Source: Rebecca billardiae RCC1528
Taxonomy: Eukaryota > Protista > Haptophyta
Assembly (NCBI GenBank): GCA_965240325.2
Contig: OZ251223.1
Span: 4,278,001 to 4,342,000 of the forward strand
Length of the DNA: 64,000 nt
Direction of reading: 5' to 3'
The stretch's first letter is position 1, and every line of letters starts with the position of its first letter. Both the position numbers and the translations under genes were made by a program. Shown in pieces: positions 11,701 through 32,158 of the stretch. Below the pieces are notes generated by a model. It was not told where the DNA came from. It was given only the letters and a program-made list of their open reading frames with translations, and searched no databases.

Positions 11701-12638
11701 CCGATGCCGTGCTCGCGCGGCTCGGGCTCGGACGCGGCGAGGGCGCGCGCGCGCGAGCCGCCGCCGCCGCGGCCGGCGCGGGGCGTGGCGGGCGCGGGGC
11801 GGTGGAGGCGCGCCCACTCGAGCGCCTCCAGGTCGAAGCGCCACACCGCGCGGTCGGCCGGCGGCCCGTCCCACTCGCCCACGCGCCCGCCCCACAGCCA
11901 GAGCGCGCCGCCGTGCGCGACGAGCGTGCCGCCCGCGCGCGCCGACGGCGCCGACGTCGTGCCGCCCGCGTGCAGGCAGCGCCAGCACGGGCCGGCGTCG
12001 GTCGGCTCGAGGGCCCAGAGCGAGTTGTCCGCCACGCTGGGCAGCACCAGCCCGGGCGGGCCGAACTTGCTCCCCGAGAAGGCGTACAGCGCGCCGGACG
12101 CCGCGTCCGCCGCCCACGCGCGGTGGAAGAGCGCGCGCAGCCGCGGCGCGCGCGCCGCGCGCGGCGGCGGCGTGCCGTCGACGAGCGGGTGCGAGCTGTC
12201 CCAGAGGCCGCAGCGCGCCTCGATCGGCGCGAGCGACGCCACCGCCGACGCCGCCTGCGCAGCCTCGGCCGACGCGTGCTCGGCGGGCGTCGCGGCGGCG
12301 CGCTGCACCGCCATCGCCGCGAGGTCGCGCACAGAGTCGGGGTGCGCGAGGCCGCACGCGGTGACGCGGCGCTGGCGCAGCTTGAGGCGCAGCGCGGCCG
12401 CGTCGGCCGACGCGTCCTCGCCCAGCGCGTCGAGCGCCTCCGCCACCAGCGCCGCCACCTCGACCGCGCTCGCGCGGTGCACCGCGCACGCCGACAGGTT
12501 GCCAAGCAGCCGCGCGCGCTCGAGCCCCGCGGCGGGCGCGGCGGCGAGGGCGGCCTCGTACGCGGCGCCCGCCTCGACGAAGCTGCCCGAGCGGAACAGC
12601 TCGTTGCCGCGCGCCTTGTGCGCCTCCCAGCCGCCCAT
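8760..12638 (-). CDS. TPR + Kelch repeats + SH3-like module + pRiA4b-ORF3-like domain + MYND zinc finger protein
   Basis: TPR HKARGNELFRSGSFVEAGAAYEAAL. Kelch PSARAGGTLVAHGGALWLWGG and PSARRHALAWSHRGRVFVYGG. pRiA4b-ORF3-like LRVSLLGVHPHPWRELEVPAEMSLRQL...ALGW...LEWVYDLGD...LLDGAGAPLPVDCG. MYND CAGC...CSKC...FCSQACLKAAWPTHRVEC. Confidence 0.8.
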   Translation of the reverse strand: MGGWEAHKARGNELFRSGSFVEAGAAYEAALAAAPAAGLERARLLGNLSACAVHRASAVEVAALVAEALDALGEDASADAAALRLKLRQRRVTACGLAHPDSVRDLAAMAVQRAAATPAEHASAEAAQAASAVASLAPIEARCGLWDSSHPLVDGTPPPRAARAPRLRALFHRAWAADAASGALYAFSGSKFGPPGLVLPSVADNSLWALEPTDAGPCWRCLHAGGTTSAPSARAGGTLVAHGGALWLWGGRVGEWDGPPADRAVWRFDLEALEWARLHRPAPATPRAGRGGGGSRARALAASEPEPREHGIGCVRGEGAAAELVVGFGDRPRSGASGVIEGLPRLWAYRLATREWRPLEDARGSAGGGALPSARRHALAWSHRGRVFVYGGELLGLGGERVRSVGDFWCFGPPLGPGGAAAPGEPAARERWTRLPALGEWPRDLSEAACATCARGPEGAGPLVLVCGGYFNNGTVGVPEAMGEAEAAERRPPWELARLRARGLDPRVSSEGYLRHCYALCADSLLWLRLPAAQDAGQRDAGKEGMPALALAMVLPLPPPRPSARAPPPAWAARPPALRLLVVGGYGFAAVSELDEGARQMAPELWEACHECVLSVCAPLLGAPWSEGAPGARVALARLDARPELNARVGRVVRPPRPHEGADARAAVELRAPAATVRVRLRQLERLDGVDVAALSPHDARLLSALGAAPPYPRTTAVSRTHPHGAERADVSFGGATRALAVQTTLTRRGGEDGGVVRAVDVYDGPLSVRGVHALQQLGACGVPVLTFDGGRTPLPAWPDAAALASECEATRAEAERLMSALSARDKCHGRVALYDRRSLDANRARGRHAEAQRVSDWMAERRARAAQRNRAVISALGGGGSGARAEGRAERALVLRVSLLGVHPHPWRELEVPAEMSLRQLADQVLAPALGWPRNYKLWAFRLRCGEGGARALLEGAGAAPDAVLGDVEPMPLCFGPAAPQAEREDPLSALGTSRPVDGMHECLWYGGALCPDTKVRVGQLLRAPADALEWVYDLGDAHTHLVQCAALRERASAGEDAPGGGVAVAGVRLLDGAGAPLPVDCGPVCAIAAELNGLWPGAQTDCAAEGPAEAEHAGGDPAERPIHLLQTQRDPPSSAAWWGKYNEIRQRVDRATALSGPDAAYHPLAFDAERTRAALARALRAPPSPLDASKFTQTSPATLHSQAPTMVGLADGGRAAGEQASRARERTKACAGCGGTANLSACSKCRGSGVVFCSQACLKAAWPTHRVECKRWREERQAAATPAHGGGDEQ

Positions 12639-12998
12639 CGCCACCGGGCGAGCGCGCGTGCGGGCTGCGCGCGCGGTTTGCGCTCGCTCGCGCGGAGACG
12701 CGGACTCGCCAGCGCAGACTCCGGTCCGGGCGGCTGCTTGCCGCCCCTGCCGCCCTGCGTGCCCAGCACTGCCGGAGTGCCGGCCTGCCGCAGCCCGCCT
12801 GCGCAGCCCGCACGGCTCCTTGTACGGGCTACCCCACCCCTGCCCCGCCACCCGGACCGGCACGGTCGACCGGTCGTTACGACTCGAAGAGGCTGTCATC
12901 ATCGTTCAGCTGAGTAGCGCTCGAAGGCGCGCGCCATCCGTCAGCGCTAATACTATCAGCTGAACGATGACAGTTGAATAAGAAGCGCGCGCCATCCG

Positions 12999-14677
12999 TC
13001 AGCTACCGGCCACAGCCCGCCGGGACGATTCGTCGTCCTGGACCTGGGAGCCTCGGGGCTCAGGCTGCGCCGGCCCGTCCGCCAGCACCGGCACGTGCGC
13101 ACTGCCGCCACCACCGCCGCCGCTGCTGTCGTGGCCGTCCTCTCCGCCGCCGGGGATCAGGCTCTCGTACAGCGCCGCCTGCTCGCGCCGCTGGCGCACG
13201 TGCATGGCGGCGGCCGCCGCGTACCCGAGCACGGCGAGCACGACGTTCACGAGGCACGTCGCGCCCATCGCCAGCGGGCGCGCGCCCGCGTGCGGGATGA
13301 GCGAAGGGAACGCGAAGTAACCGACGGTGCTCGCCAGCCCGCTCTGCATGATCGTGTTGGCGAACGCGCCCTCGCGGTTGTCCGAGAAGAGGTCGGCGAT
13401 CAGCGCGCGGTTCGGCCCCTCCCAGATCGCCCGCCCCACGCCGTGCGCCGCGTACAGCGCCAGCAGCGGGCGCCAGTGCCCGAGGGTGCTCGGTGAGAAG
13501 AGCAGCAGCGCCAACACCTCCGCGCCGAACATCGCCGCGCCGAGCTGGAGCACGGGGCCCTTGCCCACACGCGCGGAGAGCCAGGAGATGGGGAGCGAGC
13601 ACGCCGTCGCCACGCCCGAGATGACGGACGTGAGCACGCCGATCGTCGGAGCGCCTGTGGCCGCCGCCGCCGGCGCCGGCGCGTGACGCGCGCGCGAGGG
13701 CGCGCGGCCGGGCGGTGCGGTGCGCGCTCGTGGGCGCGCGCGCGCGACGCGCCGGCTCTGGGCGGTCGCGCGGCCCTCGGGCGCGGCGGCGCGCTCGGCG
13801 CGCCCCTCGCGCCGCGCGCACCCATCGTCGTCTTGACCAGCACGCCGTTCACGTAGAAGTTCATCAGCGACGCCATGAAGCCGAACGCCGTGTTGATGGG
13901 CGCGAGCAGCAGGATCTTGGGATCCCGCTGCATCAGCGCGAGCGCGAGCAGCAGCTTGGGCGAGCCGGGCTCGGCGCGGGGCGCGGCGCGCGCGGCGGGG
14001 GGCGCGCCCGGCGGCGGCTGCGCCTCGCGCAGCGGGCGCACGAGCAGCATCCCCACCGACGCGCCCAGCGCGACGCACGTGTAGATCACGAACAGCGCGG
14101 TGGGCGCGCGCTCCCAGCCCGGCCGCGAGAGCACAAACGAGCTCACCAGCTTGAGGCCGAGCTCGAGGCCGAGGTAGAGCGTGGCGAAGACGCCGGAGAG
14201 GAAGGCGGTCGCCGTCTCGCGCTCGACCTGCAGCGTGTACGCGTACAGCTCCGCCGCGCGGCCGAAGAAGTCGCCCTGCGCCGTCCAGTTCCAGCCGGCC
14301 GCCAGCCCGCCGAGCGCGGCGCCAAACAGCACCGCCGGCCAGCGCAGGCTCGGGCAGACGAGCGCGACGGCGTAGCTGCCCACGTACGCGCAGTACAGGA
14401 AGAGCCCCCAGTCCAGCGCGCCCTTCGAGCCGAGCCGGCGCACCACGTCGGGCGCGAGCAGCAGCGCGGTGAGCGTGTAGAAGGCGTACAGCACGCCCGA
14501 CGAGTACCCGCCCAGCTTGGGGCCGAGCTGCGCGGAGGCGAGGGCGAGGCACGAGGTGACGCAGCCGTGGTTGAGGGAGAAGCAGAGCGACATCATCACG
14601 AAGTTGAGGAGGATGCCGCCGGCCGTCGGCGGAAGAGACGCGCCTCGGCCGCGCGCGCCCATCGACATCGTCGCCAT
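12999..14677 (-). CDS. UNC-93-like MFS membrane protein (~503 aa); exons 14677..13822 and 13654..12999
   Basis: Multiple TM segments (NFVMMSLCFSLNHGCVT, LGGYSSGVLYAFYTLTALLLAP, LGGLAAGWNWTAQGDFF, FANTIMQSGLASTVGYFAF). A GT-AG intron at 13821..13655 joins the two ORFs in frame. Confidence 0.85.
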
Positions 14678-15014
14678 GGCGGATGGGCGTGTACGGTTGG
14701 CCGCTTGATTCAGACTTCAGACTTTGGCAGCCTCAGGAGGGCGGCTTTTCCGCGACCGCCATTGGTCCCGCCAGGTTGGACCTTGGCGGTGCCTCGGCGC
14801 CAGCACGCTGCGCCTCGCAGCTGCTGGCCCGGGCGATGGCGAGGGACAGGACGTCCCCCCGAGCGGCGAATGGCGGCGAGCCCACGCCCACTCGCAGAGA
14901 CGAGAGTGCGCGCCTGCCGCGCGTGCGCGGCGTGGCTCTTGCCCCGTGCGGCGCCGGCGGCTGACCGGCGGCCTGCGCGCCGCACGCCGCGCAGGGGTGC
15001 TGAGCACGGGCGAG

Positions 15015-18000
15015 ATGAGGATCGAGCTCCCGGGCGAGGACGTGAAGACCGACGAGGCGGGTGCCAGCCCGCCGGACAGGCGCTTCTCCTCCTCCTCGCA
15101 CTCGTCCGCGGGCTGGCGGCCGTCGTGCTCGCGCTCGCAGACCGTGCCGCTGCCGCGCAGGATGAGCGGCCCGGGCTCGGAGGCGGAGGGCGCGCGCGCG
15201 GAGGCCGGCTCGCCCACCTCCTCCCCCACCCTGCCGCCCGCGCCCGCGCCCGCGCCGCGCGCGCCCAGCCCGCCGCCGGGCGTGCAGACCATCCACGAGG
15301 GCAGCAGCCTGCTGAGCGTGAGCATGCGCGCCGACTCGCCGCCGCTCGGCGAGGGGGTGGCGTCCGAGAGCGAGGCGACGGTGCGGCGGCGCTCGCTCTT
15401 CCGCCGCTCCGCCTCGTACGACGCGTCGTACGGCTCGAGCCTCGGCCTCGAGGCGCTGCTCGGCGAGGCCGCGGCCGCCGACTCGTCCGAGCGGCTGCAT
15501 GCGGAGGTGGAGCGCCGCATGAGCCGGCCGCTGCCCGAGCTCGAGCTGGAGGGGCCGCACTCCGCGCCGCCGCTCGGGCGGTCGCGCGCGCGGGTGCGGC
15601 TGCGCGGCGCGCCGAGCGTGCGCCGCTGGCAGCCCGCGCACCGGCGCGACATCACCTTCGACTTCCGCGCCGTGAGCCCGCACGAGTCGGAGGTGCTCGG
15701 CCGCGCGCTGCCGCCCTCGCTCGGCCGCGCGCGCGCCGACTCGCTGTCGGGCGGCTCGGACTACGCGTCGCTCGTGCGGCGCGCGGCGATGCGGCCCGAG
15801 CCCAACGCCGCGCGCTGCTCCGCGCAGTACTGGACCGACGCCGCGCGCGCGCGCGACGTGGGCGACGCGGTGAAGCGCTTCAACGCCAAGCCGCGCGACG
15901 GGCTCGAGCTGCTGCGCGCGCGCGGGCTGCTGGCGGCCGAGCCGCCGCCGGGCGAGGGCGCGGACGCGGCGGGCGGCGTGGACGCGGCGGACGCGCAGGC
16001 GATCGCGACGTTCCTGCACGCGGCGCGCGGGCTGAGCAAGCAGCGCATCGGCGACTTCCTCGGCGAGCCCACCGCGCAGTCGGGCGCGGTGCTCAAGTTC
16101 TACACGCAGGCGCTGGAGCTCGAGGGGCTGCCGTTCGTGGGGGCGCTGCGCGCGTTCCTCACGCCGTTCCGGCTGCCGGGCGAGGCGCAGAAGATCGACC
16201 GGATCATGCAGGCGTTCTCCGCGCACTACCACACCTCCAACCCCGCCGTCTTCTCGTGCGAGGACACGGCGTACGTGTTCGCGTTCTCGCTGATCATGCT
16301 CAACACGGACGCGCACTCGACGCACGTGCAGCGCAAGATGACCGAGGACGAGTTCGTGCGGAACAACCGCGGGATCGACCGCGGGGCGGACCTGCCGGCG
16401 GAGGTGCTGCGCGCGGCGTACGCCGACATCCGGCGCACGGAGATCAAGACGACCACGCAGTTCGAGGAGCTCACGCAGGCCGAGCTGCTCGCGTGGCTCG
16501 CGCAGGGCTCGGTGTTCACAAAGTACACGCACGGCCGCGTGGGCGCGGTCAAGTCGCCGCGGCACGAGATCAAGCTGTGGATCGAGCGGGACACGCTGTG
16601 CTACGTCTCGCTCTCGCGGCGCTCGGGGCTGGAGAAGGCGGTGGGCGGCGCCGCGCCGCGCGAGAAGCGCGTGCCGCTGCACGAGATCCGAGAAGTGCTC
16701 GTCGGCGCCAACTCGGTCGTGCTGCGCCGCCGGCGCTCGCGCGAGGGCCAGCTCCGCGCCGACCTGTTCTTCTCGCTCGTGACGGGCGCGCGCACGCTCG
16801 ACCTGCACGCGGGCAGCCCCGAGCTCGCCGACTTCTGGGTGCGCTACTTCCGGCAGGTGGTGGAGCGCTCGCGCCTCGAGGCGACCGCGCGGCGCATCGC
16901 GCTGCGCGCGCAGCCGCGCGAGGCGTTTGTGGAGATGGCGGAGCGCGTGTGGGCGGCGGAGATCCTGCCCGCGTGGGAGGCGCAGCGCGGGCTGGAGCGC
17001 ACGCGCACGCTGTGGTGGGAGGGGGTGCCGCCCTCGCAGCGCGGGCACGTGTGGCTGCACGCGCTCGGCGCGCACCCGAGCCAGCGCGCGGACGCGGGCG
17101 GCGCGGGCGGCGCGCCCGCCGCCGAGCTCGAGCGACTCCGGCCGTTCGGCGCTTCGCACGGCGCCCCGCCCGCCCCGCCCGAGGGGTCGGCGCTGCACGG
17201 GCTGCTGCAGGGCGCGGGCGCGTGGCTCGACTCCGTGCTGCCGCGCGCCATGGCCGAGCTCTTCAGCCTGTACGGGTGAGGCGCGCCGAGCGCGGCGCGC
17301 GACCGCGCCGACGCGCGACGCGCGACAGCGCCGACGCGCGCCGCGCGCGCGCGCTCACGCGCGCGCGCGCGCGCGCCCGGCCGCGTGCCCCCTGTGCGCC
17401 CTCTGCGCGCGGCGGGCGCGCAGCCAGCCCTCCTCTCCGCTGCGGCGCGACGCGCTGGCCCTGCTCGGCGCGCTGGCCAGCGAGGCGGCCGAGGGCGGCC
17501 GTCCGGAGGAGTGGGTGCGCGAGCTCGCGCCGGACGCGCCGCTGCTGGGCGGCATGCTGCTGATTCACCTCGAGCCAGCGCTCGCGTACCGCGCGCTGCG
17601 CATACTCGTGCTCGAGCGCACGCCCGGCGGCGCGCACGCCGCCGAGCGCGAGTGGCGCAACCGCGGTGCGCGCGCGCGCCGCCGCGCCGCGCCGCGCGCG
17701 CGCGCCCGCGCCGCGCGCGCCCACGCGCGCGCCCGCCCCGCGCGCGCGCCGCGCGCCCGCGTGCCGCGTGCCGCCGCTGCCGCCGCCGCTGCCGCCGCCG
17801 CCGCTGCCGCCGCCGCGCGCACGCAGGCTTCACGCGCGTGCTCACGCAGGAGCTGCCCGCGCTCGAGCACTGCCTCTCCGCGCTCGGCGTGCCGCCCGGC
17901 TCGTACTTCAGCCGCTGGCTGCGCGCCATGTTCGTGCACGTGCTGCCGCTCGAGACGTGCAGCCGGCTGTGGGACTGCTACTTCCGAGACGGGGAGGCGC

Positions 18001-18643
18001 TGCTGTGGCGCGCCGCGCTCGAGCTGCTGCGGCTGCGCGCGCACACCATCATCGGCGAGTGCTCGCGCGACGCGAACGCGGCGGTGCGCCTGCTCAACGC
18101 GCCCGTCGACCCGGAGGAGATCTCGGAGGCGGTGCGCGCACAGGCCGCGCCGCGCGCGCCCGCCGCGCACGCCGCCCCCGCCGCGCACGCCGCGCACGCC
18201 GCGCACGCCGACGGGGCCGCGCACGCTCAACGGCCCGCTGCGCGCGCACGCCCCCGCCCCGCCCTCCGCTCGGCGCGCAGCGCCTCTTCAAGAGCATGCA
18301 CGAGCACGAGGGCGCGATGAGCGAGTGGCTGCCCCTGCTGCAGCAGCGGCTGCCGCTGCCCGAGCTGTGCTTCGACCTGCACGCCAACGCGCACGGCGCG
18401 GGGCAGCGCTCGCGCGGCACCTCCCTGTCTGTCTCGGACGCGGAGGACACCGAGGAGGGCGAGGGGCTCGAGCACTCGAGGCTCTCGACCGCGACCACCG
18501 AGACCGAGCGCACCGTCGACGACGACTTTGCCCGGCAGCAGGCGCACGCGGCACCGATGGTCTCGCCGGGCGCGGCGCCGCCGTGGAAGCCGGCGCTGCT
18601 GTCGCCGCGCGAGAACGGCGGCCGGCCGGCGCGCCCGTCATGA
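15015..18643 (+). CDS. Sec7 (ArfGEF) + PH + TBC (RabGAP-fold) fusion (~1056 aa); exons 15015-17275, 17424-17665, 17827-18131, 18281-18643
   Basis: Sec7 FNAKPRDGL, LSKQRIGDFLGE, FRLPGEAQKIDR, FSLIMLNTDAH. PH LAQGSVFTKY...TLDLHAGSPELADFWVRYF. TBC LWWEGVPPSQRGHVW and SRWLRAMFVHVLPLETCSRLWDCYFRDGE. Three GT-AG introns preserve the frame; the start codon is uncertain. Confidence 0.87.
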
Positions 18644-19189
18644 CTGCGGGCAAGCGCCGCGCCCGGAGAGCGCCGCTCGGATGGGCTCAGGCTGACCAGG
18701 AGCACTGTCGCGCGCGGCGCGCGGGTGGCCCGCGCCGTGTAACCTGAACAGCTGGGACGCTCGGCCTGACCCGAGCCGCGCCAACTGTCAGTGCCCGACC
18801 GTACTCAGCCCGGACTCGGGCGCGGCGGGCCGCGGGCGCGGCGTCGGCGCGTCGCGGCCGCGAGAGAGTGCTGCACGTCGAGCAGTCCTGTCGAGACCTG
18901 TCGGCCGGGTAGGCGTGGAAAGGTGGCCGTGGGTGACAGTGCTCCGAGGCTCTCCCGCCGACAAGCGGCAAAACCACCGTTGCGCGGCAAATGCGTCGGT
19001 CGCTCGTCAGCCGACAACTACGCCAACATCCCCATGTTCGTGATCGTGCCGCGCCGCCATCGTGGCGGTCGTACTTCGACTGCTGTAGTGCTGTGCGAGC
19101 GCTCGCACCGAGCACGCTTGCAACGGCGGGCAAGGGCGGCGCGCCCGACGACGCGCGTGGCAGCGCGGGCGCGGCCCTCTCTCGGCGCC

Positions 19190-21552
19190 ATGCTGATCCC
19201 GGCGTTCAAGCTCGAGATGAAGAACCCCATCCTGCCCGGCCTGGCGGTGGTGGGCAAATGTGCGCGCTCGGCGCGCGCGCGCGTACCGCGGCCGGCGCGC
19301 GTCGCGCGCACACTGCGGGACCGCCCACGCCGCCTGCGCCCGGCGCGCGGTGCGCGCGCCGCGCGCAGACGACGGCGAGAGCCCCAGCCTGACGTGCGGC
19401 ACGAACGGTGGCCGCGTCTTCATCCACAGCCCGCACGAGCGCGACGAGTTCACTAGCGCCGAGGTGCGGCACCTCAACATGAACCGCAAGCTCACGTGCA
19501 TCGCCGCGGGCGCGCTCGACCCAAAGTCGAAGCGCGAGGCGCTGCTCGTGGGCGCGCAGACGACGCTGTTCGCGTACGACATCCGCGACAACGCCGACCT
19601 CTTCTACAAGGACGTGCCCGACGGCGTCAACGCGATGAAGGTCGGGATGATCAACGCGTACGACGCGCCGCTCGCGATCGTCGGCGGCAACTGCTCGATC
19701 CAGGGCTTCGACCACGCGGGCAGCGAGCAGTTCTGGACGGTGACGGGGGACAACGTGGTGAGCCTCGAGTTCTGCGACGTGGACGACGACGGCCGGATGG
19801 AGATGCTCGTCGGCTCGGAGGACTTCGAGATCCGCATCTTCAACGACGAGGAGGTGATCTCGGAGGTGACCGAGACGGCCGCGGTCGTCGGGCTCGCGTC
19901 GCTGCGCCGCACCAAGTACGGGTACGCGCTGTCGAACGGGACGGTGGGCGTGTACGACCGGAACCAGCGCGTGTGGCGCGTCAAGTCGAAGCACACCGTC
20001 TCCGCCATCTGCGGCTTCGACCTCGACGGCGACGGCGAGCCCGAGCTGATCTCGGGCTGGTCGCAGGGCCGGCTCGAGGTGCGCTCCGACCGCACGGGCG
20101 ACGTCATCTTCAAGGACGCGCTCAACCAGCCGGTGAGCGCGATCGTGACGGCGGACTACCGGAAGGACGGGGCGCAGGAGGTGATCGTGTGCGGCGCGAG
20201 CGGCGAGGTGCGCGCCTACCTCCCCGCCGACCAGGAGCTCTCGGGCAACCTGATGGACACGAACGTCGAGCTCGAGCTGCTGCACGAGCTCACGCAGCGC
20301 AAGGCCGAGCTGGGCGCCGAGCTCAAGCACCTGCAGGACAACATGAAGATGGCGGGCTCGGGGCAGACGGAGGCGGGGCTGATCCCGACGTCGACCAAGG
20401 TGACCACCTCGCTCAACGTCGACCGCGCCGCGCGCTGCGTCTACCTCCACGTCGAGTCGTCCACGGCGGACGCGCGCGTGCGCGCCGTCGCCGTGTTTGC
20501 TGACCAGATCTTCGAGGGCGAGTCGCACGCCGCGCACGACCTGAGCGGCGCGCGGAGCGTGCGCGTGCCGCTGCGCCCGCCCAAGGACGTGGCCACGATG
20601 CTCGGCATCGCCGCGCTCGTCGGCGGCCGCGGCTCCACCGCCTTCCACGTCTTCGAGTCGCAGACCAAGCTGCCCAAGTTTGCGATGTACGCGGCCGCGA
20701 CCGACGCGGACGGGCCGGCGCCGCGCTCGTCCGTCTCCTTCAAGGTGCACGAGCGCACGGGGCAGGTGAAGCAGTGGGCGAACGGCGCGTTCGTCGCGGA
20801 CGTGGTGCCCGACTCGGGCTCCGCCCACTTCGCCGCGCTGCACGCCGTCTCCCTCCGCACCGGCGGCCGCCTCTCCATCCTGCTCGACGGCGGCGTCGTG
20901 CGCGTGTGCACAGACTCGATGGAGGTCGCGGCCGACGTCGTGCAGGACCTGTGCGACGCGCTGCAGATCTCCGAGCTGGAGAGCGAGGCGGAGTTCCCGC
21001 AGGAGATGGCGGCGTTCCGCGAGGTGCTGCAGCGCGTCGACGAGTACAACGCCGTCCGCGTCAAGCTCACCGCCGACATGGCCGACTCGTCCAACCTGGT
21101 GAAGCAGCTCGTGATCCGCGCAGAGGACGCGCGCATGCTGCACCAGACGCAGCTGATGCGCAAGACCTACTCGCAGCTGCACTCGCTCAACCAGGAGCTG
21201 ATCGGCGAGTACATGAAGCGCACGAACAACCACGAGCAGCTGCTCGAGGCGCGCGCGCCGCGCCGCGCCGCCGGCCGCGCCGCGCCGCCGGCCGCGCCCG
21301 CCGGCCGCGCCCGCCGGCCGCGCCCGCCGGCCGCGCCCGCCGGCCGCGCCGCCAACGCGCCGCGCGCCCCTCGCGCGCGCGCCTCGCGCGCGCACTGCGC
21401 AGGCGCTCAAGGAGGTGAACAGCATGATCCAGAAGGCGGCGCGGTTACGAGTCGGCGCGGCGAAGGGGCGGGTGGTCACGGCGTGCCGGAACGCGATCAA
21501 GACGAACAACATCCACGCGTTGTTCAAGATCATCCAGTCGGGCAGCGAATGA
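19190..21552 (+). CDS. BBS2: Bardet-Biedl syndrome 2 protein (BBSome subunit, 699 aa); exons 19190-19259, 19369-21248, 21403-21552
   Basis: MLIPAFKL...GK|YDGESPSLTCGTNGGRVFIHSPH, LFYKDVPDGVN, GGNCSIQGFD, FWTVTGDNV, LVGSEDFEIRIF, and C-terminal IQKAARLRVG...VVTACRNAIKTNNI. Intron 1 is GT-AG and intron 2 is GC-AG. Confidence 0.96.
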
Positions 21553-22871: not shown

Positions 22872-25800
22872 CTAGCCGTCGCCCGCGTCGTCGTCTGCGC
22901 CGTCGTCGACGTGGGAGGGTAGCTGGCGGCCGCTGAGCGCGTAGAGCCGGCCGAGGAGCGCGGGCAGGCCCAGGCTCGGCCCCGCCGCCCCGCCGATGCC
23001 GCCCGTCAGCCTGCTCAGCAGCGCGCTCGGTCCGCGCGTGAGCCTGCCGAGCAGCCCGGCCTCGGAGCCCTCCTCCTCCTCCTCCTCGTCCGACTCGCCG
23101 TCCGAGTCGACCGCGCGCGGCGGCTCGATGTGCATCGCCTGCATCGCGGCGCGGGCGTTGAGCCGCGCCTCGTGCTTGCGGCCCTTCTCGGTGATCAGCT
23201 CGAAGAGCGGCTGCCCCGCGTCGTCCCGCCAGCGCGCCAGCCCCTTGGGCAGCGCGGGCGACTCCTTGCGCGCCGCGACCATCTTCTCGCTCAGCCGCGC
23301 AAACGCGGCGCGCTGGGTGCGCGCCGTGCCGACGCGCAGCAGCACGAGCACGGTGCGCTGCACGTTGGCGAACTCGCGCTTGCTCACCTCGTGCAGGTCG
23401 GAGCGCTCGGCGTAGTTGGTGTACCGCGTGTACGCTGCAGGCGCGCGCGCGGGGCGGCGCGGGCGGCGCGGGCGGCGCGGGTGGGGCGTCTGAGGCGCGC
23501 GCCCGAGCCGGCGCCGCGCGCGGCGCACGGGCACGCGGGCACGCGGCGGCGTGCGACGGCGCGCCGCGCCGCGCGCCCCGCACCGTTCAGGGCCATCACG
23601 AGCGTGGCGAGCACGCCCGCGATCACGTTGGCGCGCAGGATGAGGAACATCGCCGCGAGCGTGGCGAGCACGAGCGAGTTGAACGCCAGCGACTGCGAGC
23701 GCCGCCTCAGCCTGGACGAGAGCAGCGCGTGTGCGATGCGGTACTCGCCACACAGCCGGTACCAGCGCTGCGGACGTGTGGGAGGGAGGGAGGGGGGGCG
23801 AGGGCGGAGGGTTGGCGCGGCGCGAGGTGGGCGCGCGGGGGCTGGGCGCGGAGGGCGGCCTGCGCCGCGCAGCCCCGCACCTGCAGCTTGAGCTGCCGGT
23901 CCAGCCCGAGCTTGGGCGGCAGGCTCTGTGCCGAGAGCGCGGGCGCGCCTCCGCCGCCGAGCGCGCGCAGCAGCTGTGAGCCCGCCGCGGGCTCGAAGGC
24001 GCGCGTGCCGCCGTCCAGGCCCGCGCGCGCGTCCTCGAGCAAGCCCTCGCCGCGCAGCACCGCCATGCTCGGCCTGCGCGGCGCGCTGTCCGCCTCGCTC
24101 GCGCCCTGCGCCTCCTCGGGGTCGGGCGTCTGGTCGACGTAGTCGAGCGCGTGGTACAGCTTGGTGGCGAGCTTGCCCGCGCGCGCAGACATGCCGTCCG
24201 CGCCGCCGGCGGCGCCCTCGGCGTCGAGCGCGGAGGACTCGGCGTGCAGCGCGACGGTGAGCGCGTCCACCTCCGCGGCGATCGACGCGAACTCGCGCGA
24301 GGCCACCAGGTGCCGGCTCGCCCGCTCCTCGTACCCGGCCAGCTTGGCGAACGTGGCGAGCGCGGCGACGACGGCGGTGCCGAGCGCGCTCACGCCCACC
24401 AGCACGGTGGAGAGCCAGTCGAGCGCGACGTCGACGGACTCGCCCGCGTCGGAGAGGAGCGGCGTGAAGGGCACGTTGGTGGAGTTCGCCGTCTTCGAGA
24501 AGAAGGAGGTGAGCTTCTTCGCGCCGAGCTTGGTGACGGACGAGAGCTTGTCCAACGCCGCGCCCACGCCCGCCTCCTCCGCCTCCGTCTCGTTGCCAGC
24601 CACCCAGCCGGGCGGCGCGGACGGCGGCTCGGGCGGCGCGGGCGGCGGCGCGGGCGGCGCGGGCGGCGGCGAGGGCGGGCTCGGCGGCGGCGGGTGCGGC
24701 GGCGGGTGCGGCGGCGGGCTCGGCGGCGGCGGGTTTGGCGGCGGCGACGGCGGCGGGTGCGGCGGCGACGGCGGCGGCGACGGCGGCGGCGCGCTCGGCG
24801 GCGCGCTCGGCGGCAGCGCCGGCGGCGGCGCGCTCGGCGGCGCGCTCGGCGGCGGCGGCGGCGGCGACGACGGCGGCGTGTGCGGCGGCGACGGCGGCGG
24901 CGTCGGAGGCGGCGCGTGCGGCGGCGGCGGCGTGGGAGGCGGCGGCGCGCGCGGCGGCGGCGGCACGGGCGGCGGCGCGTGCGGCGGCGGCGGCGGCGGC
25001 GGCGCGGGCGGCGGCTGGTGAGGCGGCGGCGGCTCGTGCGGCGGCGGCGGCGCGGGTGGTGGCGCGTGCGGCGGCGGCTTGTGCGGCGGCGGCGGCGCGG
25101 GCGGCGGCGGCGGCGCGGGCGGCGGCGGCGGCGCGGGCGGCGGCGGCGGCGGCGAGGGCGGTGGCTTGCGCGGCGGCGGCGGCGGCGAGGGCGGCGGCGG
25201 CGGCGGCGTGAGCGGCGAGCCCGCCGCCGCCTCCTCCTCCGCCGCGGCCGCGGCCGCGGAGCCGGAGGCGGCGTCGGGCAGCTCGTCGAGGCGGCGTCGG
25301 CGCCAGTCCTCGACGCGCCCCGCGGCCCTCGCCGCCACGCTCGCCACCGCGCCCGCCGCGTGGCCCGCGGCCATCTCGACGAGCGGAGCGAACGCCGCGG
25401 CTGTGCACACGGCCGCCGCCTGCTCGCCGAGCAGCCGCCGAGCGCCCCCGGCGGCGGCGGCGGCGGCGGGTGCGCCGAGGCTGGCGCCGCCGACGTCGAG
25501 GGCGGTGGCGTTGGCGTCCCCCGCGAGCGCGGCCTCGCCCGCGCCCCCGCCCTCGTGCGGCTCCACGATCAGCAGCGTCGAGACGAACGTCGCGACCGCG
25601 AGGCCCAGCATCTGCACGCGCGCCAGCCGAGCCTTGTTCAGCTCGGCGAGGCCGAGGTGCGCGTCGCTCAGCTCGCGCGCGCGGCGCCACCAGCCGAGGA
25701 GCAGCGCGAGGCGGCGCTTGGAGGGGGCGGAGGTGCGCACGATGGGCTCGGTCAGCGGCGCGAGCTCCTTCGCGTCGCGCACCAGCGCGCGCAGCGAGAT

Positions 25801-27585
25801 GTGCTTGTACTGCGCGCGCACCGCGCGCGGCAGCGGCGGCATCGCCTCGTACGCGGACGCGTACCGCACGGAGAGAGTCGCCATCGTCGAGCGGAGGTCG
25901 AGCTTGCGCAGCCGGCTGAGGGCGTCGTCGGACACGCCGGTCGGGCGCGTGGCGGGCGGCGGGTCGGGCTGCGGCCTGTGCCGCCGCCGCCGCCGCTTCG
26001 CCGCCGCCGCCGCCTCGACGTCCTCGGAGGCGGCGCCCGCCTCGGACGGGGCGGCGCCGTCCGCGCCCGCGCCCGCGCCGCGCAGCCGGCGGAGCAGCGC
26101 GAAGCAGCTGGGCGGGCGCGGCAGGCTGGGCAGCGGGAGGCCGAAGCAGCCGCCCCGCCCGCCGTCGTCCTCGCCCACCACGCCGCTGCCGCCCGTCAGG
26201 ATCGGCAGCAGCGCCCGCCCCTTCTCGTCGCGCAGCAGCCGGAGCAGCGGCGCGGGCGGCAGCGCGGGCGCGCCCTCCGCCGCCTGCTCCGAGCGGTTCG
26301 CGAGCGCCTTCGCGCCGACGAGCTGCTCGCGCGCGGTGCCGGTCATGAGCAGCGCGCGCGAGTCGCGCGCGATCGCCGCGTACCGGCGCGACGTGCGCCG
26401 GTGCGCCGTCGCCTTGCTGTCGAACGCCATGAAGCGGCCGAGCGCGCCGAGCGCCGTGACCGCGCACGCGAGCGCGTTGGCGAGGCCGCCAAAGAAGCCG
26501 CCGCCGCCGTTGAAGAGCAGCAGGCCCGCCGCGGTGGAGAGGCAGAGGATGTAGAAGGAGATGGCGTCGTCGCGCGCGCGGTTCGCGTTCCCGCGCGTCG
26601 CGTGCGCGATCTGCAGCTCCACCGCCGTGCGGTGCATCCGCTGCAGCGAGAGGTTGGGGCCCTCGCCCGAGACCGCGCCGTTGTTGCGGTCGGCGCGGTG
26701 CCGCGCGCGCGCGTTCAGCGCGGCGAGCGCCTCGCGCCGCTCGCGGCGCGCGCGCTCGAAGCCCTTCTCGAACGAGACGCACGAGCACGTGCGCACCGCG
26801 CGCACGCCCTTGCGCACGCGCTCGGGCACGTCGCGCGAGACGAAGGTGAGCACGTCCGTGCGCAGGTGCGCGCAGCACTCGTGCAGCTCGAGCGCAGCCT
26901 CGGGCTCGAGCGACGCGAAGATGGCGAGCACGTGCTGCGCGACGTCGTCGAACGCGTCGGCCGCGGCCTGGTGCTCCGTCGTGCGCACCGCGTACCCGGC
27001 GAACGCCATCCACGACGTCATCGCCGCGACGAGCGTCGCGATCACGCCCGTGGCCATGCCGGCGCCGCCGACCGAGCCGTGCGCGCCGGCCTCGCCGCCG
27101 TCGGCGGCGGCCGTGGCCGAGGCGCGCGAGAGCAGCGCGACGATCCCGGCGAGGACGAAGGTGAGGAAGCCGATCAGCCTGGTCCACAGGTAGTTGCGCG
27201 TCATCGAGCGCGTGTGCGCGTGCGCAAACTCGCGCGCCTTGCAGTAGAACAGCTTGAGCAGCTGGAACTGGCGCACCGTCGTGCGCACGGCGGGGCGGAG
27301 GGGCACGAGCGGCGCGACCTCGTCGAGCTCGTCCGCCAGCGCGCCCACCGAGATGTACTCGTACCCGCGCGGCAGCGGCCGCGGCAGCGCGGGCGCCGAC
27401 TCGAGCGCGGCGCCAAAGTTGTCCGACACGCCCGCCAGCACCTCGCCGAGCGACTGCGCGGTGGGCGGCTCGACGGGGGGCAGCTCGGCGAGCGGGTCCT
27501 CGGTTCGAGGGAGCGCGGGGAGGCCGGGGCCGTCGGGCAGCGCGTCGCTCCGCGGCGCGCTCCGCGGGAGCAGGCTCGGCGCCAT
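22872..27585 (-). CDS. 4x SLATT-like (2TM) repeat membrane protein, paralogue A (~1483 aa); exons 27585..23881, 23767..23584, 23434..22872
   Basis: Four modules of the form helix-H...TM1-loop-TM2...(F/Y)...H...(F/Y): KAREFAHAH...AFAGYAVRTTEHQAAADAF; LQIAH...FMAFDSKATAHRRTSRRY; RARELSDAH...KLAGYEERASRHLVASREF; CGEYRIAH...YTNYAERSDLHEVSKREF. Two GT-AG introns. Confidence 0.8.
24620..25215 (-). repeat. Pro/His-rich extensin-like coding repeat inside the loop of module 3 of paralogue A
   Basis: Encodes PPPPPSPPPPP, HAPPP, SAPP and PHPPP runs between TM1 and TM2 of module 3. Confidence 0.85.
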
Positions 27586-27995
27586 CGGCGCGCGCCCGAC
27601 TACGGCACTCGCCAACTTCGCCAGGCGCGCTGGATCAGTGCAGTAGTAGTCGCGCCCCTCACCAGTTCCCGAGAGCGAAAAAGGACGAACGCGCCTTTCA
27701 AACTTGGTTCTTGATCTGCAGCACTTATACGAAAAGTGAGCTTCGCGCGCGGTTCGCCCGCGCCCCGCGGCGGCGGCAGACCCAATAATGCGGATGAAAT
27801 ATGAGTACGGTGTGCAGCCAATCATCAGCATTTGGTGGTCTTCCCGTGCGTGCGCGCCCGCCCGCACGGGTCGCGACGAACGCCTTCGCAGCCGCCGAGG
27901 GGCCGCTGCGTGCTGACCAGTGCCCAGCCCGGCGCCGGGGAGAGGCGCCTCGTGGGACTGGCCGCCGCCTGCGCCACCGTGCGCGCCCGGGCGCC
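27586..27995. promoter_or_regulatory. Putative bidirectional promoter between the two SLATT-like paralogues
   Basis: 410 bp between divergent ATGs, locally more AT-rich, with CCAAT at about 27782 and 27819. Confidence 0.5.
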
Positions 27996-30900
27996 ATGTC
28001 GCTCATGGCGTTCGTCGACCGCTTCCGCGAGAAGCGCGACCCGCTCGCCAAGCTGCCCGAGATGGAGCCGCCGACCGAGGAGTACCTGCGCGAGTACGTC
28101 GCCAACGTCTCGACGATGTTCCAGGGGGTGCTCGAGGCGCGGCCGCACGTGGACAACCCGCTGCCGGGCAACTACCGGTACATCTCCGACGTCGACGTGA
28201 AGCGCGAGGACGCGTGGCTCGCGCCCGTCCTCCCGCGCAAGCCGGTGCTGCCCGTGTCGGTGCGCCGCTGGCAGCTGCTCCGCTCGATGTACGTGAAGAG
28301 CCGCGAGTTCGCGCACCTGCACCAGCGGTACGCGACGTCGAACTTCGTCAAGACGCAGGTGATCGCGGTGCTCACCTCGCTCACCACGGTCGCCGTCGTC
28401 GTGCTGCTGTACGTGCTCCACCTCGACGAGGCGGCCGTGCTGTTCTCGGCGGTCTCGTCGCTGCTCGTGTCGATGGTCAACTCGTGGTCGGCGTTCGCGC
28501 GGTACGACGCGCTGACGGAGGAGCACGAGCAGGCGGCCGATCGGTTCGCCGACATCGCGTCCGACATCCTCGCCTTCGTCGCCTCCGTCGACCGCCCGAG
28601 CGCGCGCGCGCTCGCCTCTTTGTGCGACCACCTGCACCTCGACTTCCTGAGCGCGCTCGTGCGCGGAGTCAAGTGGCTCAAGGCGCACCTGCTGCGGTGC
28701 CCGCCCAAGCTGCCGCGGCTGCGCGCGCCGGGCGTGCACATGCCCGACGGCGTGCACGTGGGCGCGCCGCACCTGCCCGGCGGCGTGCACGTGGGCGCGC
28801 CGGTCGTGCCGGGCGTGCACGCGCCGCACGCGCCGCACCTGCCGAGCGGCGTGCACGCGCCCAGGCTGCGCGCCGTGCACGCGCCCAAGCTGCGCGGGCT
28901 CGGCGCGCTGCGCTCGCCGCTCGAGGGGGTGGAGACGGGCGTGGAGCACCTCTCCGAGGAGGCCAAGCAGCGCCTCATGCAGCACACCAACTTCCGCCTG
29001 CAGCTCCTGCTGCGCAACACGACCGAGCGGCAGCTCGCGCACGGCGCGGTCTCGCGCTTCAACCGGCGCGTGGCGCTCGTCCTCGCCTTCACGATCCTCA
29101 ACGCGACGACGGCGATCGGCCTGCTGCTGCTCGGCGGGCAGGGCTCGGCGTTCGCGCGCCTCCTCGCCTCGGCGATCTCCGCCGCCGTCACCGTGCTCAA
29201 CACCATCGCGATGGCCGGCGGGTTTGCGTCGAAGGCGATCAACCACTCGCGCGCGTCCAAGCGCACCGCGGCGATCGCGCGCAAGGTGCGCACCGTGCTG
29301 AAGACGGTGGGGCGGCGCGAGCAGGAGGCGGCGGTCGACGCGCTCGAGTTCGAGTTCAAGACGGCGACCAAGGAGGCGCCGCGGCTGCCCAGCCGCTTCG
29401 TCCTGCGCAACATCCGCGACGAGGGCCTCCACCCGCTCGTGCCCATCCTCGCGGGCCAGGGCATCTACGGCGCCGCGGTGCGCGACTGCGCGCGCGCGCC
29501 GCGGCTGCACGCGCGGCTGCACGAGGGGCCGAGCGCGGCCGGCGCGAGCGCGCGCGCGCGGCGGCCTGCGCCCGCCCCCACCCTCGCCCGCCCTTTTCCC
29601 CCGCCGCGCCCCGTGCGCAGGACACGGCCTCGCCCCTGGGCAACCTGTGCGGCTGCGCGCAGCTGCTCTTTGGCACGCACGGCTCCCGCGCGACTGCCGA
29701 GGACGTTGAGCGCGCGTGGGCCAACGTGGACGACAGCCTGCCCGCGGAGAAGAAGCCGAGGCCGCCGCAGGGCGTGTCGAGGGAGCTGCTCGAGCTGTGC
29801 GCGGACATGGCGCTGCCTGTCTTTGTGAACGAGGTGCGGCAGGCAGGCGGGCAGCAGCCCAGCAGCGCGAGCCGATGCCACGCGCGGCGCGGCGGCGCGC
29901 GCGGCGGCGCGCGCGCGGCGGCGCGCGCCGCGCGCGCCGCATCACGCCCCGCGCCCCTGTGCGCGCGCGCGCGCGCGCGCGCGTGGTCGCGCAGATGGGC
30001 TCGCGCTTCTCCGCGCAGTGGGAGGTGATGCCCGAGCTGCCCGCGTGGGCGCGTCGCAAGCACGCGCTGCTCTCGTTCGAGGCGCTGTCGGCGGAGGTGC
30101 AGGCGGCCGCGCCGGTGGACACGCCGCTCGACTTCTCGTCGCTCGTGTCCAAGCGGCGCATCGCGCTGCTGCTGCGCTGGTACATGCGCGCGCTCGTGCT
30201 GCAGAGCGCGCACCGCGAGCTGGCCGAGCGGAACAAGCGGCTGCTCATGCGCTGGCAGCTCTTCGCCCTCGGCCTCGCCACGTTCGTCACGGTGATCCTG
30301 CTGCTCGTGCAGCCGAGCACCATCCCGCACTCGGAGCAGGCGGGCTTTGGCGCGCAGGCGGGGGAGAATCTCGGCGAGGCGGCGGAGCACAACGCCGAGG
30401 CGACGCTCGACTGGGCGCTGGAGCACGTGCCGCTCATCTCGGCGGGGATCTCCGCCCTCGTCGGCGCGATCGGCTCGTTCGTCAAGCTCGCCTCCTTCGA
30501 GGCGAAGCACACGGGCCACCTGGTCGCCTCGCGCGAGTTTGGCGCGATCGGCGTCTCGATCGAGCGCGTGGTGATCGAGGTGGCTTCGGTCGCGGCCCGG
30601 ATCGAGGAGCAGCTGGGCAAGGCGGGCGTGGGCAGCGCGGGCGCGAAGCCCAAGGTGGCGATCAACGTGCGCACCTCCGCCACGCTCTTCGCCGCGCTCG
30701 ACTACGCCGCCGCCTTCCCGCTCCTCGAGCGCGACGAGGACGAGGACCTGGGCGAGCACGTGCCCCCACAGCTGGGCGCGGACGGGCAGCTGGACGCGGC
30801 GTTTGAGCAGGTGCTGATGGACAGGGAGGGCGCGGCGGCGCAGGCGGCGGCGGACGAGGCGGCGGGCAAGAAGCGGCGGCGGCGGCGGTGGCACGCCATC

Positions 30901-31636
30901 GAGAACGAGTACCTCCTCGGCGAGCCCGACGAGCCAGCCCTCGGCGCGGAGGGCGAGGCGGGCGGCGCCGACGACGACGGCGGCGCGGGTAGCGTCTCCA
31001 GCTCGTCCGTGTCGGGCGGCGCGGCGGACGAGGAGGAGGGGCTCGGCGGCTCGGTGGCGGGCTCGGCGCGCGGCGGGCGCGGCGGCGGCGCCAAGCCCGG
31101 CGCCAAGCCCGGCGCCAAGCCCGGCGGCGCCGCGCCCGCCGCGCCGCCGCCCGCGGCGCCGTCGAAGGAGGTGCTGGCCGCGCGGCGCAAGCGGCAGCGC
31201 GCGCGGCAGCAGCTCAAGGGCGAGGCGCTCGAGGCGGCGGATCGGCTCAAGGCGGCGCAGCTCGCGATGCTCAAGCAGATGGCGACGACGCACGTGCCGC
31301 TCACCCCCGCGGCGTACGTGCCGCCCTCCGCGCGCCTCGACTACCTGCTCAAGCTGCAGCTGTGGTACCGCAAGGCGGGCGAGTACCGCGTGGCGCACAT
31401 CCGCATGGGCGCCGCGTACCACCGGCGCTCGATGGCCCTCGCCTTCAACGCGCTCGTGCTGTCCACCGCCACGTCCGTGCTGCTGGTGATCCGGCTGCCG
31501 TACCGCGGGCTCGCCTCCGCGCTCTCCGCCCTCGTCATGGCGATCAACGGTGCGCGCCGCGCGCCGCCGCGCGCGGCCCCGCGCTCACGCAAGCGCCGCC
31601 ACGCCTCCCTCCCTCTCTCACACAGCGTGCGCGCGC

Positions 31637-31667
<31 letters not shown>

Positions 31668-32158
31668 CTCGCCCAGCGTACGACCGGTACATGGACTACT
31701 CGGGGCTGTTCTCGCACCACGAGGTGAGCCGGCGCGACTTCATGCGGCTGCAGCGCGAGATGCTGCTGCGCATGCGCACGCACACCAACCAGAAGAACCT
31801 CGAGAACTTCGACCAGCTCGGCATGCGCTTCTCCGACCTGTTCCGCGAGATGCCGATGCTGCCGGCCGAGATCAGCGCGTGGACGGAGGACGACGACCTG
31901 CCGTTTGTGCAGCGCGTCGCGACCAAGCTGTACCGCTGGGTGATGGGCGAGGAGCCGGTGCCGCTCTTCGAGTACATCACCGAGGAGGCGCTCACGCGCG
32001 AGGCGGAGGCGAACATGAACGCGGCGCTGCAGGCGATCGGCGTCGAGGCGCCGCGCCCGCCGATGCCCAAGCAAAAGGGCGCGGGCAGGCTGCGCTCCGC
32101 CGCGCGCAAGTACGGCAGGCGCCTCCTCAGGCTCATTCACGCAGTCGTCGCCAAGTAG
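27996..32158 (+). CDS. 4x SLATT-like (2TM) repeat membrane protein, paralogue B (~1243 aa); exons 27996-29477, 29621-29833, 29995-31549, 31677-32158
   Basis: Same four modules: KSREFAHLH...AFARYDALTEEHEQAADRF; RQLAH...GFASKAINHSRASKR; RALVLQSAH...KLASFEAKHTGHLVASREF; KAGEYRVAH...YMDYSGLFSHHEVSRRDF. The last intron lies at the same position and phase as in paralogue A (MAxN|AY). Confidence 0.8.
31638..31667. repeat. (GT)n microsatellite inside intron 3 of paralogue B
   Basis: TGTGTGCGTGTGTGTGTGTGTGTGTGTGTG. Confidence 0.85.

Follow-up and report, generated by a model that had tools for sequence, protein, structure and literature searches.

What do two long, divergently transcribed genes with repeated pairs of membrane helices encode in a haptophyte genome, and how are they related to the SLATT effectors of bacterial immunity? 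We address this question for genes A and B, which lie head-to-head in a 64,000-nucleotide stretch of Rebecca billardiae RCC1528 (Eukaryota; Protista; Haptophyta; GenBank assembly GCA_965240325.2, contig OZ251223.1, positions 4,278,001 to 4,342,000 of the forward strand), the whole of which we call the window. The SLATT superfamily comprises the Pfam clan of SLATT_1 to SLATT_5, SLATT_fungal and DUF4231, together with the NCBIfam family NF033632 SLATT_4. Its members are predicted effectors with two transmembrane helices (2TM) in prokaryotic nucleotide-signalling, TIR, GAP1 and reverse-transcriptase (RT; DRT10/UG17, DRT3) defence systems, and they are among the commonest predicted bacterial immune effectors, with a mechanism that is still unsolved. 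Elsewhere, in the conflict systems of bacteria and giant viruses, the domain is known in single copy and predicted to form pores. We show that A and B are old paralogues of a small family of eukaryotic polytopic membrane proteins, in which each chain carries four SLATT modules of two alternating types. This four-module eukaryotic SLATT family is real and apparently undescribed; the superfamily is already known, and the novelty lies in the architecture, that is, in four SLATT hairpins arranged in a fixed order.

The assignment of the A and B modules to the SLATT superfamily, first proposed in a sequence-only reading of the window, is statistically solid. The first 520 amino acids (aa) of gene A match NCBIfam NF033632 SLATT_4 over two stretches with 62.5 bits (E 3.9e-17), above the curated cut-off of 55; exon 1 and exon 3 of gene B score 50.2 bits (E 2.4e-13) and 41.5 bits (E 1.2e-10), which is under that cut-off yet highly significant, and a database homologue, P0002, reaches 106.8 bits over three stretches. 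The Pfam SLATT_4 match of B exon 1 is borderline (26.1 bits against a gathering score of 27), and four homologues (P0002, P0003, P0008 and P0009) exceed the gathering score for Pfam SLATT_1/4. PADLOC '2TM effector' models match at about 1e-6, and a predicted fold, discussed below, points to the same superfamily. Taken singly, 10 of 18 type I modules and 5 of 20 type II modules match SLATT_1 or SLATT_4. These two sets, drawn from genes A and B, their paralogues and homologues in the databases, are the separate alignments on which the description of each module type is based.

The eight modules of A and B can be aligned end to end, and hydropathy gives eight transmembrane (TM) segments, arranged as four hairpins, in both proteins, as the sequence-only reading had predicted. 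That reading also described four tandem modules. The number stands, but the modules are not equal: BLAST cross-hits pair module 1 with module 3 and module 2 with module 4, so that each chain is better written as (I-II)x2. The profiles of the two types match each other from end to end (hhalign probability 99.3%, E 1.4e-20). The repeating element is a double-SLATT unit of ~450 aa, in which an N-terminal motif (alignment consensus AP.LPRPLP..Y..I) precedes a type I 2TM module, a linker and a type II 2TM module, and a C-terminal motif (AP.LPP...L..D..G.PLF.LIT) follows. A and B each contain two tandem copies of this unit, hence the order I-II-I-II and a total of eight TM helices.

Each module also has recognisable sequence features. 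The helix before the first TM segment follows the consensus [YW]-x-[KR]-A-x-E-[FY]-x-x-x-H, in which the His is nearly invariant, as are the Arg and Glu in type II; after the second TM segment comes [FY]-x6-H and then ..F..I, with a His that is invariant in type I. In module 1 of B, the invariant His residues include H108 and H177. Both TM helices of the modules are enriched in small residues (Ala, Gly, Ser, Thr). The short motifs through which the modules of the two genes had originally been paired are indeed present in both, namely KAREFAH/KSREFAH, HLVASREF, GEYRIAH/GEYRVAH and HEVSKREF/HEVSRRDF. A and B are ~38% identical.

The composition of the window is 70-85% GC. True coding frames were recognised by the GC content of third codon positions (GC3), which is 0.94-1.00 in one frame per exon. 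Analysed frame by frame, this signal changes frame precisely at predicted GT-AG introns in both genes; on the minus strand, it follows one frame from ~27550 to 23880, a second over 23767-23584 and a third over 23434-22872. All five introns of A and B begin with GTGCG, end with AG and measure 113-161 nt. GC3 periodicity and these uniform GTGCG...AG introns, which restore the frame, support both gene models. Within the proline-rich stretch of module A3, where all three codon phases are GC-rich, composition cannot tell coding sequence from an in-frame intron. Splitting each side into two separate two-module genes was considered and rejected, since A, its paralogues C and D and the homologues P0001 and P0002 span both units in one continuous coding frame.

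The two genes are divergent, with start codons separated by the 410 bp that the sequence-only reading had given. This gap, in which codon periodicity is lost, is presumed from its sequence to hold a shared or bidirectional promoter together with the 5' untranslated regions (UTRs). Co-transcription of A and B, which had also been suggested, does not follow, as divergent genes could have at most a promoter region in common. One intron is shared: in both genes it lies where the last of the eight TM helices ends, in phase 1, splitting an Ala codon (G|CG) after ..ALN in A (23435-23583) and ..AIN in B (31550-31676). The earlier claim of a common intron position and phase thus holds, and it extends to paralogues C and D and to an orthologue from another organism. 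The phase 0 intron of gene A (23768-23880) is absent from gene B, which for its part has two introns beyond those of gene A's linker. A (GT)n / (GTGTGC) microsatellite occupies 31636-31668, within gene B's copy of the shared intron. The features of the locus are collected in Table 1.

Table 1. Positions of genes A and B, their SLATT modules and associated features in the window (position 1 is the first nucleotide of the window).
Feature	Coordinates	Strand	Details
Gene A	22872..27585	-	exons 27585-23881, 23767-23584, 23434-22872; 1483 aa; four SLATT modules, 8 TM segments
Module A1 (type I)	26905..27282	-	aa 102-227; TM1 27121-27177, TM2 27010-27060
Module A2 (type II)	26338..26661	-	aa 309-416; PADLOC 2TM effector E 1.4e-6
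Module A3 (type I)	24244..25725	-	aa 621-1114; TM5-TM6 loop 386 aa
Pro-rich insert in A3 loop	24595..25218	-	69% Pro over 208 aa; extensin-like / hydroxyproline-rich-glycoprotein-like
Module A4 (type II)	23328..23904	-	aa 1228-1332; cut by introns 23768-23880 (phase 0) and 23435-23583 (phase 1)
Inter-ATG region A/B	27586..27995	.	410 bp; GC down to about 0.5-0.65; codon periodicity lost
Gene B	27996..32158	+	exons 27996-29477, 29621-29833, 29995-31549, 31677-32158; 1243 aa; four SLATT modules, 8 TM segments
Module B1 (type I)	28254..28592	+	aa 87-199; Pfam SLATT_4 E 7.8e-6 on exon 1
Module B2 (type II)	28980..29309	+	aa 329-438; model residues 329-481 match SLATT_4/DUF4231 cluster, TM-score 0.82
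Module B3 (type I)	30145..30585	+	aa 616-762; acidic 39-aa loop; NCBIfam SLATT_4 E 1.2e-10 (exon 3)
Module B4 (type II)	31336..31783	+	aa 1013-1119; cut by shared phase-1 intron 31550-31676
Upstream host genes	9036-21320		Kelch + PRiA4_ORF3-like protein, MFS/UNC-93 transporter, Sec7 ArfGEF, RabGAP-TBC protein, BBS2

How widely is this architecture distributed? Exactly four members can be detected in the 72-Mb genome, namely A to D, each built as I-II-I-II, and no canonical single SLATT gene was found in it. Paralogue C lies 1.8 Mb from A/B on the same contig and D on another contig, and neither has a family member nearby. The phase-1 intron is common to all four genes, and the other intron of gene A is also present in C. 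In C and D one frame stays open from end to end, since by chance their introns contain no stop codon and preserve the frame. When 1.84 billion cluster representatives were searched exhaustively with HMMER (E ≤ 1e-3), only 28 proteins were retrieved, all from metagenomes or Logan assemblies and none with a meaningful name, and a module scan showed that nearly all of them are built of alternating I and II modules. A separate homologue search, with gene A aa 1-520 and with an alignment, gave no matches, as low-complexity words probably crowded the candidates, whereas HMMER found the 28.

Four-module orthologues are present in at least two other eukaryotic assemblies. One is formed by P0001 and its downstream exons on an 18-kb contig (L012) that also carries the eukaryotic genes TBCC, GT8 and zf-CW. 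The encoded protein is ~33% identical, and both module-4 intron positions of gene A (after ..KLQ and in the Ala codon after ..LN) are kept at L012:9800-10360; as this assembly is unrelated, the retention of both positions at such a level of identity indicates that the module-4 introns are old. The second orthologue is made up of P0006 and P0002, which adjoin on one aquatic-metagenome contig (L013). Both orthologues are single and unpaired, and C and D likewise stand alone, so the pairing seen in A and B is not a family trait. Other relatives vary the theme. P0011, P0013, P0014, P0018 and P0021 form a separate clade of what appear to be genuine two-module proteins, and P0017 is a further two-module relative; P0003, P0004 and P0012, some of them from AT-rich organisms, are giant relatives of 1600-2600 aa whose modules are parted by soluble inserts of ~1400 aa with no Pfam match.

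A maximum likelihood tree of concatenated I+II cores, from six four-module genes and single-unit relatives, orders these events. In all six four-module genes, unit 1 and unit 2 fall in separate parts of the tree, and a node with bootstrap 85 joins the unit 2 sequences to the single-unit clade, to the exclusion of those of unit 1. From the placement of the two unit sets, it follows that the unit duplication predates both the paralogues and the split of the sampled organisms, which bears out the proposal of the sequence-only reading that the internal repeat is older than the A/B duplication. The topology is ((A,C),D),B in both halves, so that the adjacent genes A and B are the most distant pair.

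Structure prediction adds a fold to this picture. AlphaFold2 modelled B exon 1 (494 aa, modules 1-2; alignment of 23 sequences) with a mean predicted local distance difference test (pLDDT) score of 80.2 and a predicted template modelling (pTM) score of 0.76. Each module starts with a helix of ~50 residues that leads from a juxtamembrane segment into TM1; a tight turn connects TM1 to TM2, and a helix of ~28 residues follows (H87-140, H145-168 and H170-198 in module 1; H331-380, H385-408 and H410-437 in module 2). Order extends to the region of the N-terminal motif and to the residues past module 2, with disorder confined to the linker (241-314). Against the ESM Atlas, model residues 329-481 superpose on a bacterial SLATT_4/DUF4231 cluster with a template modelling score (TM-score) of 0.82 (root-mean-square deviation 2.3 Å over 149 residues); further fold matches are SLATT_5 (0.72) and unnamed Nucleocytoviricota clusters (0.63). 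In BFVD, the best matches are annotated SLATT proteins of giant viruses of algal and protist hosts (probability 1.00), all single-module and 170-290 aa long, with examples in Klosneuvirus, Pyramimonas orientalis virus, Aureococcus anophagefferens virus, EsV-1-184, Tetraselmis viridis virus S1, Heterosigma akashiwo virus and Feldmannia virus. Sequence and Foldseek searches of the PDB gave generic helical-hairpin matches only (Z below 8) and found no solved SLATT structure. Several three-TM membrane subunits align over model residues 146-413 of B exon 1, which places the hairpins of modules 1 and 2 in contact with each other; together with the high pTM, these alignments argue for packing between modules in the I-II pair, and in that pair only.

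The orientation of the hairpins can be estimated from their flanks. Lys and Arg residues number 2-5 in the pre-TM flanks and 0-2 in the short TM1-TM2 loops, and among the four TM1-TM2 loops of gene A, N-glycosylation sequons, three in number (NAT, NET, NST), occur solely in the long loop of A3, which is probably lumenal or extracellular. On the strength of this Lys/Arg distribution and of the sequons, we infer for all hairpins that flanks and linkers face the cytosol and that loops face the outside or the lumen. In the TM5-TM6 loop of module 3 of A (24750-25000), C and D, we also noted a conserved Ala-rich stretch of moderate hydrophobicity and, after it, WRRR. This stretch stays under the TM threshold, and could be a re-entrant or extra membrane segment that would alter the topology of the long loop.

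What might such proteins do? SLATT domains are predicted to alter membrane permeability once triggered (PMC7159879, PMC9503650), and the DRT10 defence system requires its SLATT protein, the activation of which has been called an 'open question' (10.64898/2026.04.29.721553). By analogy with these prokaryotic proteins and with those of viruses, the A and B chains may act as regulated membrane-permeabilising or ion-conducting elements. Types I and II may pack side by side as a pseudo-heterodimer, as the model of B exon 1 suggests, and the fused repeats would then stand in for the oligomerisation of single-module SLATTs. The conserved His, Arg and Glu residues of the putatively cytosolic helices, with the flanking motifs, could form a gating or ligand site for a signal acting in trans; we place this signal in trans because sensor domains are neither fused to the proteins nor consistently encoded next to them. 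The head-to-head arrangement of A and B would be a relic of an ancient local inverted duplication, one that may provide co-regulation and would not be a requirement of the family. Taken as a whole, the double-SLATT anatomy combined with a regulated permeabilising or ion-conducting role is the best explanation we can offer, and we hold it tentatively, judging it to have a little less than an even chance of being right.

Several observations weigh against this explanation. That SLATT domains form pores is itself no more than a prediction in the literature that we read (10.64898/2026.04.29.721553, PMC7159879), and the TM helices of the family have no charged residues and no evident hydrophilic lining. 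SMODS, SLOG, TIR and RT domains are absent from A, B and their homologues and from the genes adjacent to A/B, C and D; a trans-acting partner may still exist, since eukaryotic genes need not cluster. The covalently pre-assembled pseudo-tetramer proposed in the sequence-only reading goes beyond the models, in which only the I-II pair packs with confidence. The AlphaFold2 model of paralogue C, made from 1200 aa that include two in-frame introns and from only 7 sequences, reached a pLDDT of 54.5 and a pTM of 0.38, too weak to judge whether four modules make one bundle. A predicted complex between unit 1 of B (aa 20-494) and unit 2 (B exon 3 without the last helix) scored 0.00, a value that speaks neither for nor against contact, as the fold of the partner was itself uncertain. 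The splicing of gene B between unit 1 and unit 2 is predicted from sequence. Finally, old paralogues, conserved introns and housekeeping neighbours suit a constitutive role equally well as an immune one.

This last point leads to a serious rival, namely that the family consists of constitutive housekeeping membrane proteins of flagellate protists, for instance a channel subunit, a tether between membrane and cell wall or a scaffold, which descended from the SLATT fold and have no part in conflict or cell death. Four old paralogues with intron positions kept across species imply long vertical inheritance, and a sensor or signal-generating partner is missing from A, B, the homologues and the A/B, C and D loci. 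The surroundings are also those of ordinary host genes. Besides A and B, the window encodes Kelch, MFS/UNC-93, Sec7 ArfGEF, RabGAP, BBS2, ERGIC/ERV and REJ/GPS proteins, in which trafficking and ciliary functions figure; BBS2 is a BBSome subunit, and its presence implies a cell with cilia or flagella. The genes next to A/B, next to C and next to D bear no relation to each other and are mostly housekeeping, with D flanked by ClpB and a hybrid histidine kinase. Moreover, the extensin-like, sequon-bearing loop of A resembles cell-surface glycoproteins such as the product of the neighbouring SPPP-REJ-GPS gene. That gene is a single open frame of 7762 codons at 32649-55937 (+), which starts with SPPP/SPPPP repeats over ~14 kb, beyond which lie REJ (E 9e-35) and GPS domains and TM segments; its product looks like a polycystin-1-like receptor with a giant ectodomain of the hydroxyproline-rich-glycoprotein type. 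The opposite strand of this frame carries a G-rich pseudo-ORF (open reading frame).

On the other hand, the family is very sparse (28 of 1.84 billion representatives), which would be unusual for a core function, and all characterised or predicted contexts of SLATT domains are conflict-related (PMC7159879, PMC9503650, PMC12220804). Paralogue C stands head-to-head with a gene for a NOV_C domain, formerly DUF3883 (E 6.6e-20; L008:6832-8700 (-) = G000:C3 about 2476831-2478699), and an annotated SLATT gene of Gephyrocapsa huxleyi, comparable with A and B by annotation only, responds to virus infection conditions (10.64898/2026.09.30.755861). On balance, we think that a purely constitutive role is less likely than not, while taking it seriously.

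A and B could also be obligate partners, co-expressed from the 410-bp region as the two subunits of a heteromeric 16-TM channel. The case for a heteromer comes down to the adjacency of the two genes, with their 5' ends head-to-head; that they are the two most divergent paralogues is what would be expected under sub-functionalisation. However, C and D have no family partner nearby, and the orthologues on L012 and L013 are single, so we regard an obligate partnership as improbable.

Less probable still, and by a long way from likely, is a recent capture of A and B from a giant virus or a polinton-like virus, by which they would be endogenous viral genes. The closest look-alikes outside the family, by structure and features, are single SLATT proteins of algal and protist Nucleocytoviricota, and SLATT genes are common in the polinton-like viruses of algae (PMC12220804, 10.1101/2025.10.09.676808). 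But these viral proteins are single-module, and the composition and GC3 of A and B are the same as those of neighbouring host genes. Their spliceosomal introns are conserved between species, and no capsid, polymerase or integrase was seen among the housekeeping genes of the window; a search of IMG/VR with a single protein found no relative. Since the genes resemble the host in both composition and introns, recent insertion from a virus is unlikely, while ancient exchange with viruses, in either direction, is possible. That the long ORFs might be artefacts of extreme GC content or decayed pseudogenes is scarcely credible: although frames of >1000 codons open by chance on both strands at 75-80% GC, here GC3 periodicity is strict and in one frame only, modules and motifs are conserved with a confidently predicted fold, and homologues that are 20-33% identical in unrelated assemblies, AT-rich ones included, effectively refute a chance origin.

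Returning to the explanation that we favour, a regulated permeabilising or ion-conducting role built on the double-SLATT anatomy, it is tempting to go one step further. Flagellate algae and protists may have chromosomal, vertically inherited SLATT channels that come pre-oligomerised, as four hairpins fused in one chain and built from the I-II pseudo-heterodimer. These may serve as membrane-perforating executioners or ion-flux switches in a eukaryotic antiviral or cell-death pathway, with evolutionary links to the single SLATT genes of the giant and polinton-like viruses of their hosts, and A and B may be a co-regulated two-subunit version. We offer this broader scenario as speculation that is rather doubtful in its entirety. 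Whatever their function, A and B provide a natural SLATT concatemer for structural and electrophysiological study of how SLATT proteins assemble. They would add a new domain to the continuity of immune effector modules from bacteria to eukaryotes, and they are candidates on the host side for membrane events triggered by viruses or for the programmed death of phytoplankton cells. Even with a housekeeping role, this is an eight-TM family, with conserved motifs and invariant His residues, that current eukaryotic annotation has overlooked.

How do A and B compare with systems already known? In the literature that we searched, we found neither tandem or four-fold SLATT proteins nor a double-SLATT unit with such flanking motifs. 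The statement of the sequence-only reading that no eukaryotic protein with this architecture had been described is therefore correct for the literature, but it needs qualification, as unnamed homologues of the same architecture are already present in public assemblies. Outside the superfamily, the four-domain Nav/Cav channels relate to tetrameric Kv or bacterial NaV channels by the same logic, in which the unit of a homo-oligomer has been fused by duplication; the analogy is conceptual only, as these channels have no sequence or fold relationship to A and B and an oligomeric SLATT pore is undemonstrated. Among nuclear algal genes, EMIHUDRAFT_256646 of Gephyrocapsa/Emiliania huxleyi, which we set beside A and B by annotation alone, carries a SLATT annotation and is linked to infection conditions, as it is reported to be regulated in opposite directions during EhV infection with and without HHQ (10.64898/2026.09.30.755861).

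The closest comparisons are those within the superfamily. SLATT domains are known from bacteria, giant viruses and the polinton-like viruses of algae (PMC12220804, 10.1101/2025.10.09.676808), and at least one haptophyte gene has been annotated with the domain (10.64898/2026.09.30.755861). With the prokaryotic proteins, each A and B module shares the helix/TM/TM/helix fold, with significant matches in both sequence and structure. In contrast to them, the A and B chains carry four modules of two alternating subtypes, family-specific motifs flanking the I-II units, spliceosomal introns, long linkers that are disordered and, in A, an external loop of 386 aa, and they have no fused or adjacent SMODS, SLOG, TIR or RT partner. 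The SLATT proteins of Nucleocytoviricota and polinton-like viruses differ from A and B in having a single module within 170-290 aa, whereas A and B are intron-bearing host genes; at the same time, these viral proteins are the best look-alikes outside the family, and they belong to the same ecological sphere of algae and their viruses.

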